DNA from: Lytechinus pictus
Lineage: Eukaryota
Direction of reading: 5' to 3'
Assembly: GCF_037042905.1 (NCBI RefSeq)
Contig: NC_087260.1
Coordinates: forward strand, 16,120,001 to 16,184,000
Length of the DNA: 64,000 bases
Under the pieces are notes generated by a model. It did not search any database. It saw only the letters and a program-made list of their open reading frames with translations, and was not told the DNA's origin. Below, piece by piece: positions 5,103 through 62,569 of the stretch; position 1 is the first letter of the stretch; each line of letters starts with the position of its first letter. The translations under genes and the position numbers were made by a program.

Positions 5103-8100
5103 TCAGAGGGGCATGTTGGCATGTTTCTTGGGTGGATTGCTCTGCTGTTTACCGGCTAACAGGTCAAGGTCACGGCAGATTCGCTTCCGGGTCACATTTG
5201 GAGGAATGATGTCATCAACAAATCCTACATGGAGAAAACAAGAAAAAAAAAAGAAAAATGAAAATACATTGTTGCACTTGCATAAATAAACCAAGTATGA
5301 ATAGACTATGCAAAAGTTTCAGATCAATTTTAACCCTGTCAATAATGATAGCTGGATTTAGCTTAGACCTCCACCAGCTACTTTACCAGATTCCGCACAT
5401 CCTCTAACCTAAACCAACCCGCCACTTGCTTCTGTCCTTACAATTTGGTAGGGGATACTAGTGAGGTGTTGCAAAAAATAAGGTGCAGTTCCAAATCAAG
5501 CAAACGTCCCAAAACTATGAGTTAGTCCTTTAATTAAATGCAAATTCTTAGTTGACTTCTCAACTTTCTTGCAATGCTTCATTACATATGATTTGCAATT
5601 GAACTTAAAGGAGAATGAAACTCTTGGAGCAAGTTAGCTTTTGTGAAAGCAGAAAAATCAAAGAATAAGATCAACAAAAGTTTGAGTAAAATAGGACTAG
5701 CAATAAAAGAGTTATGAGCATTTGAATGTCGAGATCACTAATGCTATGCAGATCCTCCCATTGGCAATGCGACCAAGATCTGTGATGTCACACACGAACA
5801 ACTCTCCCCTTTGGGACACTGAAAATATACCCCAAAACATCTCTTTTTGCTCATTCTAATCATATGACAAACGATTCATCAATGATAATAATGATGTGAA
5901 ACCTCTGTACTTGTCCTCTCATAAAGAGAACACCTCACCTTGTGATAGACTCTATAAAAATGAGAATATAAGTGAAATAAGTACTAAAGTAATGAGGGAG
6001 TTGTACGTGTGTGACATCACAGATCTTGGTCGCATTGCCCATGGGAGGATCTACATGGCATTAGTGATCTCAATATTCAAATGCTCAAAACTTTCTTATA
6101 ATCCATTCAATCTTCCTCAAACTTTCAACAATATGATTCTTTGATTTTTCTCTTTGATATGGATTCAGCTGGTTTCAAGGGTTTCATTCTCCTTTTAAGA
6201 TTCTTGCAACACCTCATAAAGCGAGTCATTCTGTTTCAGGTCGTCCGTCTACTTCATCTACTACAACCCATTTTGCAATTGAAATTAAGTTTCTTGTGAC
6301 ATTTCATAAGTCAAATTCGCCCATCTCTTTCATCTACCAAAGAAAGAGGTGATGCCCATTTGGAAATGATTTTCAGGGTAACATAAGGTGACCTACCTCT
6401 GGTGGCAGCAGGGAAAGGATTAGCAAACTTATCAATGTACTCCCGCTCTCTCTCAGCTGCCTCTTGGCCATCTCGGAAGATGATCTTTACTGCCCCCTGG
6501 GGAGAAACAAAGAACAAAGTGGAAAATACAAGATCAGGGGTAGTGCTTTATGGGAGGGGGAGGTGAGCAACTGCCCCCCCCCCTTGATTTTCAAGTAGTG
6601 GGGGAAAGAGAAAGATAAAAAATAGGAAGAAAAGGAAGAGAGAAGAAAGAAGGGCATGTAAAATGAGAGGTGTAGGGAAGTAAACCGCCATATTACTCCT
6701 GTGATTCAATTGAGAAAAATAATTGGTAATCTTGCCCCCCCCCCCACGTCCCATACCCTGGCATCTCCCTGCTTTAGATAAAAATTGAGGAAGAATGTAA
6801 ATCAATGTAAAGAAATTAATGGCTTATATCCAGTAAATAAGATCACAGTTCCAGTCTAAAAAAAAGTCAGAAATCTTCGGGCCAACAGGATTTGAATCTA
6901 TTACCTACTGCTTCCTGGGAATGTTATTATATTCCTTCATTTTGGGTCCAACTCAATTACCAAAACACTTATTCATGGTAACTATTAGAGCATTGTTATA
7001 CTCACAGCTGCTCCCATAACTGCTACTTCAGCAGTGGGCCAGGCGTAGTTGATGTCTCCTCGTAAATGCTTTGAACTCATCACGTCATATGCACCACCAT
7101 ACGCCTGTAAAGTAGAAAATACAATTGTTTTGTTATCATAAGGTCCTTTATTTTCAGTCAGGAGTATCAAGGGGTTTATTTATTGAATTCTCATATGCCA
7201 TAATCACAAAAAAGAATAAGAACTTAAAATGCAAATACATTTATTTTGGGAGAGTGTTCAATCCCACTGTTTGCCCCGTTCTTTCGTCCAACCACAACAA
7301 TTTAATTTAACTATGGTTGAACTACATGTCTTTGAATTGAAAGCCATGTTTCTGGGGGAAAAGGTGTTTAAAGGTAAAAGACAGTAGTTGCAGCAAACAA
7401 TCATTTCATGAGAAAGTCTTTTAAATCAAGTTTAATTGCTACCATATTATCATACATGTATATCTGGTACATCACTGTAAACTTATCTTTGTGGACATCT
7501 TAAAATCTTAGCTCAAAACTGATAATTCTGATGATCACTAACACAGAAATGCATATGTGGGTCAGTGTATTAATATTGCTTGGGAAAATACCTGACATTT
7601 GACAGAATTTGGTTTTTATTTTGCTCATTTCTCAGCAATTACACATTTTCTTCGAGAGTCATATGGCACAGTTTTTTTTATTTATACATACAAACCCTTG
7701 AGTGGTAATTTTATTAGATTCTGTTTGAACTCATTTTGAGACAACTGGTATTTATCTTCAAGTAAATGCAGCATAAAATAGGTTGGTGAACTGTAAGCCT
7801 CTTCTTTGGTATCTGTACCACCATGCAAACCTTCAAAGATCAGCTTAAAACAGTAGTTTGTAACTTTCAATAACGTTTTTTTTTGTGTGCCCCTCGTGGC
7901 TATTTCTATACCAGTGACATCTCACCAACCCTAAGAAAAAGATAAGAAAAGCCCTCATGAGTATGAATGCAGAATATTCTTACCTTCCTAGTGATAACAG
8001 TGATCTTTGGTACAGTTGCTTCAGCATAGGCATAGAGGAGCTTGGCACCATGTCTGATAATACCACCGTATTCCTGACTTGTTCCTGATTGGGAGACACC

Positions 8101-62569: not shown

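Follow-up and report, generated by a model that had tools for sequence, protein, structure and literature searches.

Irimia et al. (2012) described 593 conserved bilaterian gene pairs, which are enriched in the 5'-5' orientation (PMC3514665). Gaps under 1 kb are also enriched among these pairs, a signature of bidirectional promoters, and the pairs as a class bear signatures of selection (PMC3514665). HSPE1-HSPD1 and HADHA-HADHB are examples of such conserved ancestral microsyntenic pairs (CAMPs), with non-paralogous genes in 5'-5' orientation (PMC3514665). Genomic regulatory blocks are defined by their target gene, which is a developmental transcription factor (PMC3514665). In the human GRCh38 assembly, PPP2R3A, MSL2, PCCB and STAG1 follow each other in this order, the annotated ends of PPP2R3A and MSL2 being about 1 kb apart and the gap between the gene ends of MSL2 and PCCB being 53 kb (PMC7187337).

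We analysed a 64-kb stretch of the genome of the sea urchin Lytechinus pictus (the window), in which PCCB on the minus strand lies head-to-head with MSL2 on the plus strand and MSL2 lies tail-to-tail with PPP2R3 on the minus strand. The products of the trio are a carboxylase subunit, an E3 ligase and a phosphatase regulatory subunit. The arrangement is a real example of a well-known class, the deeply conserved gene neighbourhoods; it reveals no new kind of system, and conserved pairs of this sort are known by the hundreds. PCCB-MSL2 is probably a CAMP of the co-regulation or bidirectional-promoter type and not a genomic regulatory block. Like HSPE1-HSPD1 and HADHA-HADHB, it consists of non-paralogous genes in 5'-5' orientation; the gap is below 1 kb in most invertebrates sampled, the pair is kept from cnidarians to vertebrates, and both genes are broadly expressed and non-developmental, as in co-regulation CAMPs. 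Unlike in those examples, the products of PCCB and MSL2 have no known common pathway, the tight gap was lost in amniotes while the order was kept, and PPP2R3 accompanies the pair as a third gene. A search of article texts, as distinct from the supplements to Irimia 2012 and Simakov 2015, found no discussion of the trio as a case of synteny. Apparent mentions of MSL2 in microsynteny papers proved to be the DOI string msl205 and not the gene.

Human 3q22.3 (EPHB1 - PPP2R3A - MSL2 - PCCB - STAG1) and the urchin locus hold the three core genes in equal order, and the human order given in the first-pass annotation matches the published coordinates (PMC7187337). Vertebrate orientations like those of the urchin were seen directly in a shark (Callorhinchus, PCCB/MSL2 divergent) and in a bird (Melozone, MSL2/PPP2R3A convergent). 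The spacing differs. PCCB and MSL2 are separated by 335 bp between start codons in the urchin versus 53 kb between gene ends in human, whereas the coding regions of MSL2 and PPP2R3 are about 13 kb apart in the urchin versus about 1 kb between annotated gene ends in human. STAG1 lies by PCCB in human, whereas the urchin has an echinoid-only gene in that place. The proposed check for STAG1 further left of the window came out negative: the only STAG-domain locus in the genome, at 1.46 Mb of C16, is on the same chromosome as the trio, 14.7 Mb away.

The identities, positions and orientations first assigned to the three genes were all borne out by Pfam searches, tblastn/tblastx comparisons and matches to human proteins. 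The coding region of PCCB (propionyl-CoA carboxylase beta) spans 5103-19544 on the minus strand, with the ATG at 19542-19544, the stop at 5103-5105 and about 16 exons, whose positions are given as bounds of high-scoring segment pairs (HSPs) and not as exact splice sites. From the 5' end they lie at 19347-19544, 18244-18369, 16253-16372, 15702-15890, 15077-15151, 14042-14116, 13143-13202, 12203-12268, 11463-11567, 10494-10604, 8945-9073, 8408-8536, 7984-8088, 7000-7113, one within the ORF 6314-6547, and 5103-5225. The Pfam domain Carboxyl_trans was matched exon by exon across 7003-18369 of the window, and the last exon corresponds to positions 455-493 of its 493. Exon 1, which is covered by minus-strand RNA, and the C-terminal exon were confirmed by direct reading of the sequence. 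The exons share 50-100% protein identity with the MSL2-adjacent PCCB genes of five other species (tblastx/tblastn).

MSL2, the E3 ubiquitin ligase of the MSL complex, is encoded at 19880-21148 on the plus strand by an intronless coding region of 422 aa. The ORF contains an N-terminal MSL2-type RING (zf-RING_10, PF16685, E 4e-30) and a C-terminal CXC domain (MSL2-CXC, PF16682, E 3e-13), and an alignment of 14 species shows no variation in the cysteines. In five orthologues the start codon coincides exactly with position 19880. The protein is 74% identical to that of S. purpuratus, orthologues were found across Metazoa, and the gene is single copy in the genome. Stranded RNA-seq gave a plus-strand depth of 8-20 over MSL2 with no plus-strand intron; coverage falls near 21.2-21.3 kb, beyond which a weak tail on the same strand extends to about 24.9 kb.

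PPP2R3 (PP2A regulatory subunit B'') spans about 59 kb, and the window holds its 3' two-thirds (34082-62571, minus strand). The exons within the window, again as HSP bounds, are at 34694-34804, 35781-35939, 36518-36679, 38860-38937, 40259-40315, 40872-41033, 45393-45491, 60340-60444 and 62464-62571. The introns are long, including one of about 15 kb between 45491 and 60340. Two candidates were found for the stop, one at 34667-34669 and the other in a possible last exon within the ORF 34085-34273. The 5' exons lie past the window end, in window coordinates at 69484-69594, in the ORF 74615-74947 and at 92917-93054, the last of which is matched by the first exon of PPP2R3 in the coral Porites. 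The Pfam domain EF-hand_13 is split across the exons at about 62.5, 60.3 and 45.4 kb, while matches to EF-hand_7/EF-hand_5 stayed below the Pfam gathering cut-off. The gene has both the P2R3B EF-hand region and the calcium-binding EF-hand pair expected of a B'' subunit of the PR72/PR130/PR70 type. The exons are 50-86% identical to their Saccoglossus and Lineus counterparts.

The likeness to human 3q22 could in principle be spurious, resulting from paralogues or from adjacency of independent origin, but this reading is effectively refuted. In a search against human chains, the PCCB exon at 15705-15878 matched residues 124-180 of human mitochondrial PCCB with 6 mismatches in 57 positions (E 5e-29), and MCCC2 was absent among its matches. 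The Carboxyl_trans domain here is closest to that of PCCB, not to those of MCCC2 or ACC, and the other Carboxyl_trans loci tested in the genome are ACC on C19 and MCCC2 on C3. MSL2 and EF-hand_13 are each found at a single locus in the genome, the latter in PPP2R3. The neighbours recur in six further species, and an independent origin would have a chance of about 1e-8 per lineage given about 2-3 x 10^4 genes. No support was found on the other side; the sole caveat is that urchin PPP2R3 is a probable co-orthologue of vertebrate PPP2R3A and PPP2R3B and not one-to-one with PPP2R3A. Its exon at 36518-36679 matched human PPP2R3B (E 3e-23) and PPP2R3A (E 5e-22). The two vertebrate genes arose by duplication, so one-to-one orthology with PPP2R3A is not expected. 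The urchin genes are true orthologues of human PCCB, MSL2 and PPP2R3A/B, on which the original comparison depended.

The start codons of PCCB and MSL2 are separated by 335 bp (19545-19879), which contain both 5'UTRs and a putative shared bidirectional promoter. The observed/expected ratio of CpG in this gap is 1.60. In stranded RNA-seq (n=3 runs, one study), minus-strand RNA reaches about 19.7 kb, and RNA from the plus strand begins at about the same point. Across the three runs, the first-mate-on-plus depth fell from 8-20 over 19300-19499 to 1-4 over 19500-19699, and the first-mate-on-minus depth rose from about 2 over 19700-19899 to 8-20 across MSL2. The short gap, its conservation in five distantly related species and the divergent transcription from it suggest that PCCB and MSL2 share one bidirectional promoter. 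Two motifs in the gap are candidates for a function in it. A consensus ETS/GABP-type motif, ACTTCCGG, is at 19553-19560 on the minus strand, 9 bp upstream of the PCCB ATG, and a palindromic CRE-type motif, TGACGTCA, is at 19739-19746, 134 bp upstream of the MSL2 ATG. In a motif scan, the ACTTCCGG octamer was also present in the crinoid gap and absent from the gaps of the other species compared, while the full TGACGTCA site was found in the urchin only, with half-sites alone elsewhere. The scan found no promoter motif in the gap shared between phyla, and blastn gave no match of the gap to other species, a comparison of low power at these very large distances.

In a comparison of the neighbourhood across animals, a single species stood for each lineage and the flanks covered extended 10 kb to either side of MSL2, so that absent means not within 10 kb; the orthology of PCCB neighbours was checked by tblastn. 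PCCB and MSL2 were divergent in all six species with the pair (the urchin, the sea star Asterias, the crinoid Anneissia, Saccoglossus, the elephant shark Callorhinchus and Porites). The ATG-to-ATG gap was below 1 kb in the urchin (335 bp), Saccoglossus (361 bp), Anneissia (394 bp) and Porites (444 bp) and wider in Callorhinchus (1734 bp) and Asterias (5991 bp), the PCCB start codons of Asterias, Anneissia, Callorhinchus and Porites being checked by translation. The acorn worm Saccoglossus has the identical trio, PCCB(-) MSL2(+) PPP2R3(-). MSL2(+) and PPP2R3(-) are tail-to-tail at 8.3 kb in Melozone (PPP2R3A), where PCCB is not within 10 kb of MSL2, and at 4.1 kb in the ribbon worm Lineus, a nemertean. 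In Porites all three genes are adjacent, with PPP2R3(+) inverted, 5.1 kb downstream of MSL2(+) and with its 5' exons nearest MSL2. In Priapulus, a sawfly, Lingula and Haliotis, the 10 kb to either side of MSL2 held no trio partner; Lingula is a weak negative, as one of its two MSL2-like genes was inspected, and so is Haliotis, where no gene at all is called in that range. No MSL2 was identified among the named representatives listed for amphioxus, tunicate, sponge, placozoan and ctenophore. Among metagenome MSL2 loci, from unknown eukaryotes and mostly on short contigs, none of 59 had a PCCB or PPP2R3 exon; the positive controls worked, but with such contigs this negative carries little weight.

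The same two neighbours of one gene recur in several phyla beyond chance, which indicates that the arrangement was inherited. The first-pass annotation had proposed that order and orientation were kept since the deuterostome ancestor. Conservation over that span is supported by the Saccoglossus trio, the shark PCCB/MSL2 pair and the bird MSL2/PPP2R3A pair, and orientation is kept in Saccoglossus and in the shark and bird pairs but not in the coral, where PPP2R3 is inverted. As an age of the block, however, the deuterostome ancestor is too young: the coral trio and the tail-to-tail MSL2/PPP2R3 of the nemertean indicate that the block predates Bilateria.

Inheritance could have been neutral, with an ancestral trio under no selection surviving in slowly rearranging genomes. 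Its survival in cnidarians, ambulacrarians, vertebrates and some spiralians would then follow from small breakable intergenic targets (0.3-13 kb). The losses do fall in lineages of scrambled gene order (priapulid, insect) and at 59/59 metagenome MSL2 loci, PPP2R3 is inverted in the coral, and amniotes kept the order even though the PCCB-MSL2 gap grew to between more than 10 and 53 kb. Also in line with neutrality, STAG1 as the next human neighbour was not retained in the urchin, and blastn over seven loci did not find conserved non-coding DNA. Neutrality, however, does not predict a start-codon gap held at 335-444 bp in four lineages that split more than 500 million years ago, and, since both genes are transcribed outwards from this gap, breaking it cannot be neutral. 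Together with the selection signatures that conserved pairs show as a class (PMC3514665), these points make inertia alone an unlikely explanation.

The MSL2-PPP2R3 side was examined for an element that could hold it together. About 13 kb separate the MSL2 stop from the 3' coding end of PPP2R3 (21149-34081). This spacer includes the 3'UTR of MSL2 and presumably that of PPP2R3, together with an interspersed repeat at 21500-21900; its ORFs are short and junk-like only. Overlap of the 3'UTRs was considered as a reason for the tail-to-tail pair and rejected. Apart from the repeat at 21.5-21.9 kb, stranded RNA-seq showed no minus-strand RNA at 21.9-25.3 kb, so the 3'UTRs of MSL2 and PPP2R3 do not overlap there, and coral PPP2R3 is oppositely oriented. 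A search for conserved non-coding elements had also been proposed. When seven orthologous loci, from distant species and with the 10-kb flanks of MSL2, were compared with the window by sensitive blastn (word size 9), coding exons alone were matched; the spacer did not align at the nucleotide level with its counterparts in other species, and no Rfam RNA family was found within the window. Thus neither 3'UTR overlap, conserved non-coding DNA nor Rfam families provided a constraining element between MSL2 and PPP2R3.

These negatives bear on a genomic-regulatory-block constraint, under which enhancers of one gene would lie inside or beyond its neighbour, in the PPP2R3 introns or the 13-kb spacer, and make the genes inseparable. 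Like such a block, the locus keeps functionally unrelated neighbours together over more than 600 million years, and PPP2R3 is long and intron-rich. The adjacency outlasts the change of orientation in the coral, which fits a constraint of distance rather than of strand, and the ends of human PPP2R3A and MSL2 lie close together (PMC7187337). The locus differs from such blocks in that it includes no developmental transcription factor, the defining target (PMC3514665), among its three genes, and in that no conserved non-coding element or Rfam RNA was detected. The nearest homeobox gene, of the aristaless type, is separated from the 5' end of PPP2R3 by about 40 kb and does not belong to the human 3q22 neighbourhood. 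We consider a regulatory block very unlikely here.

The explanation that we favour, and regard as probable, is that PCCB-MSL2 is held by a shared promoter and MSL2-PPP2R3 by weak constraint or inertia. PCCB and MSL2 would be transcribed divergently from one very short common promoter, and a rearrangement that parted them would disrupt the promoter or 5'UTR of at least one of these housekeeping-type genes. Because such damage would follow from a break in the gap, rearrangements of this kind would be eliminated by selection, and promoter sharing would be the reason that the pair survives. MSL2 is small and intronless; the shared promoter would anchor it on its PCCB side, and the spacer on its other side is modest, at 4-13 kb. 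The MSL2-PPP2R3 adjacency, which is kept in ambulacrarians, vertebrates, a nemertean and a coral and broken in the sampled ecdysozoans and some spiralians, most likely persists by weak constraint or by mere inertia in slowly rearranging lineages. The cis-regulatory constraint originally proposed for the whole trio is accordingly supported for PCCB-MSL2 by the 335-bp gap and divergent transcription, and finds no corresponding element for MSL2-PPP2R3.

Several observations run against this explanation. The amniote PCCB-MSL2 pair persists though the shared promoter was evidently lost (53 kb in human, more than 10 kb in the bird), and the gap in Asterias is 6 kb. The pair was lost in several protostomes, which shows that the constraint is not absolute, and the species compared have no promoter motif in common.

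The coral-to-vertebrate microsynteny is clean and checkable, and the behaviour of its halves differs. For PCCB-MSL2 there is a concrete candidate mechanism, with a gap of about 0.3-0.4 kb in four lineages; for MSL2-PPP2R3 there is none. With this contrast, selective and neutral retention of gene order can be compared within one locus, as a small natural test case. The promoter sharing might even reflect a functional coupling of PCCB and MSL2 over more than 600 million years, with elements in the spacer or gene body of PPP2R3 feeding the same promoter, although we hold this to be highly improbable. If true, a single promoter would jointly tune a propionyl-CoA-consuming enzyme and MSL2, which serves the MOF histone acyl-transferase complex as scaffold and E3 ligase; chromatin acylation would then be tied to the metabolism of short-chain acyl-CoA. 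The arrangement is also relevant to linking regulatory variants with genes in the MSL2/PCCB association locus at human 3q22.3.

Shox was considered as a possible identity of the homeobox gene upstream of PPP2R3, which would have mirrored the human PPP2R3B-SHOX neighbourhood. This candidate was rejected, as the best match of the homeodomain is to aristaless/ALX.

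The window covers G000:C16:16120001-16184000 in a genome of 812 Mb. Successive minus-strand exons in it matched the Pfam Carboxyl_trans profile and make up PCCB. Comparison with orthologous loci resolved about 16 exons, from exon 1 (ATG at 19542-19544, protein start MASVHV) to the last exon (stop codon at 5103-5105, protein end KKHANMPL). One exon shows 6 mismatches in 57 residues to human mitochondrial PCCB, and the best solved-structure matches of a PCCB exon were PCC beta chains throughout, with MCCC2 not listed among them. The other Carboxyl_trans loci tested in the urchin genome are ACC on chromosome C19 and MCCC2 on C3; a fourth, at G000:C11:19767137-19772905 on the minus strand, has an open frame of 677 aa. 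The MSL2 coding region, which has no intron, occupies 19880-21148 on the plus strand and encodes the MSL2 RING and CXC domains. The gene is single copy by genome-wide search, its ATG is in exact register with those of five orthologues, and the protein is 74% identical to that of S. purpuratus. In PPP2R3, on the minus strand, one Pfam EF-hand_13 domain is divided among three exons at 62.5, 60.3 and 45.4 kb, and more exons at 34.7-41.0 kb match orthologous loci. The gene extends past the window, where 92917-93054 holds the homologue of the coral gene's first coding exon, and the genome has no other EF-hand_13 locus. For one exon, the matches to human PPP2R3B and PPP2R3A have E values of 3e-23 and 5e-22. 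Domains, human matches and orthologous loci thus bear out the identity, place and orientation that the first-pass annotation had given to the three genes.

The neighborhood was surveyed around MSL2 orthologues, reaching 10 kb to either side. The acorn worm Saccoglossus has the same arrangement as the urchin, PCCB(-) MSL2(+) PPP2R3(-). Asterias, Anneissia and Callorhinchus have PCCB(-) and MSL2(+) head-to-head, with PPP2R3 not within the 10-kb flank. In the nemertean Lineus longissimus, MSL2(+) and PPP2R3(-) are tail-to-tail with 4 kb between them, and AMMECR1 occupies the place of PCCB. Other, unrelated genes lie within 10 kb of MSL2 in Priapulus, the sawfly Athalia and Lingula (one of its two MSL2 copies), and Haliotis has no called gene within that distance. 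At 59 metagenome MSL2 loci no PCCB or PPP2R3 exon was found, while positive controls were detected. The coral Porites lutea has the trio adjacent, as PCCB(-), 444 bp, MSL2(+), 5 kb, PPP2R3(+); the inversion of PPP2R3 is confirmed by its 5' exons, which lie closest to MSL2. The orientation of PPP2R3 is common to all sampled bilaterians that retain the pair, and the coral differs. Based on this survey, the adjacency of the trio is older than the cnidarian-bilaterian split and was repeatedly lost in protostomes. The proposal that it had been kept since the deuterostome ancestor therefore pointed in the right direction and set the age too young. Deeply conserved gene pairs are already well known, with hundreds on record; a literature search outside the genome-wide supplementary pair lists found no paper naming the PCCB-MSL2-PPP2R3 trio.

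On human chromosome 3 (GRCh38), PPP2R3A is at 135,965,673-136,147,891, MSL2 at 136,148,922-136,197,241, PCCB at 136,250,306-136,337,896 and STAG1 at 136,336,233-136,752,403, in a table that does not give strands (PMC7187337). The human orientations stated in the first-pass annotation agree with the divergent PCCB(-)/MSL2(+) of the elephant shark and with the bird locus, where MSL2(+) and a PPP2R3A-type gene(-) of 1130 aa converge. The first-pass annotation had suggested looking for STAG1 further left of the window. No STAG gene adjoins urchin PCCB; the genome has a single STAG-domain (cohesin SA) locus, G000:C16:1461415-1462663 on the minus strand, 14.7 Mb from the trio on the same chromosome, a position compatible with conserved macrosynteny and not with microsynteny.

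The two start codons of PCCB and MSL2 are 335 bp apart in the urchin. The corresponding gap is 361 bp in the acorn worm, 394 bp in the crinoid and 444 bp in the coral; it is longer in the shark (1.7 kb) and the sea star (6 kb). In amniotes it has widened, exceeding 10 kb in the bird and reaching 53 kb in human, and the gene order was nonetheless kept. In three stranded RNA-seq runs from the urchin species of the window, minus-strand RNA covers PCCB exon 1 and fades at 19.5-19.9 kb, and plus-strand RNA climbs from about 19.7 kb over the entire MSL2 ORF, with no plus-strand intron. This divergent RNA leaves room in the gap for both TSSs and both 5'UTRs, and the 335 bp therefore fit a bidirectional promoter. 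The CpG ratio of the gap is high, and it holds a consensus ETS site (19553-19560) and a palindromic CRE (19739-19746). Since neither motif is conserved across phyla in the PCCB-MSL2 gaps, we only infer a regulatory role for them from the sequence. Irimia et al. 2012 (PMC3514665) described a co-regulation class of conserved pairs enriched in the 5'-5' orientation with gaps below 1 kb, and PCCB-MSL2 resembles this class in its 5'-5' orientation and, in the urchin, in its gap of less than 1 kb. A minor minus-strand spliced RNA was also seen inside the MSL2 coding region, at 20029-20386. Its joint skips 356 bases, ends in CT..AC (GT..AG on the minus strand) and was carried by four reads of one RNA-seq run only; antisense reads also covered 19.9-20.3 kb at low depth. 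Possible readings are a promoter-upstream antisense RNA and an alternative first exon of PCCB further upstream.

The coding regions of MSL2 and PPP2R3 are about 13 kb apart. MSL2 coverage falls about 10-fold at 21.2-21.3 kb and continues as a weak tail on the same strand to about 24.9 kb. The three stranded runs contained no minus-strand RNA at 21.9-25.3 kb, the repeat at 21.5-21.9 kb excepted, so the 3'UTRs of the two genes do not overlap there. Just 3' of MSL2, this interspersed repeat (21500-21900) draws reads on both strands, with deeper coverage, many loose ends and variant letters. A mechanism requiring convergent 3' ends of MSL2 and PPP2R3 is spoken against by the coral inversion. The search for conserved non-coding elements, proposed in the first-pass annotation, gave coding-exon matches only in a sensitive blastn against seven orthologous loci, and no Rfam family is present. 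The trio might also be kept together as a genomic regulatory block, a model that does not fit because PCCB, MSL2 and PPP2R3 include no developmental regulator. The suggested cis-regulatory constraint is supported for PCCB-MSL2, in which it would take the form of a shared bidirectional promoter, and not for MSL2-PPP2R3, where RNA-seq, blastn and Rfam revealed no element tethering PPP2R3 to MSL2. Weak constraint or inertia most likely accounts for the latter adjacency.

The genes upstream of PPP2R3 are unrelated to the trio, namely an LRR-type ORF and an aristaless-type homeobox gene, both in urchin DNA beyond the right end of the window. The former is a single exon of 1104 aa on the minus strand (L020:898-4209, equal to 114898-118209), the N-terminus of which (CPENCNC...) looks like a leucine-rich-repeat N-terminal cap. 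The latter is of the aristaless/Arx paired-like type, and two of its exons were located on the plus strand (L025:9158-9832, equal to 133158-133832, and L026:2120-2875, equal to 136120-136875), about 40 kb past the 5' end of PPP2R3. Its top solved-structure match is Drosophila Aristaless, and it is neither SHOX nor a human 3q22 neighbor. On the other side, at the place held by STAG1 in human, an uncharacterized echinoid-restricted protein has its last exon or ORF (1340-2218, plus strand), convergent to PCCB. The protein has no Pfam domain and is 92% identical to L. variegatus LOC121429910 and 50% to S. purpuratus XP_011678174. With the 74% identity of MSL2, these values point to a camarodont urchin, probably of the genus Lytechinus. 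The PPP2R3 intron of roughly 15 kb that separates exon 45393-45491 from exon 60340-60444 holds an uninterrupted ORF of 1646 aa, rich in S/T/D/P repeats and antisense to the gene (53046-57986, plus strand); its sole Pfam match is a weak one to Cdh1_DBD_1. PCCB exon 2 of Saccoglossus occurs twice in the assembly at the MSL2 locus (L006:4896-5021 and L006:7735-7860, 2.8 kb apart), either as an exon duplication or as an assembly artefact.
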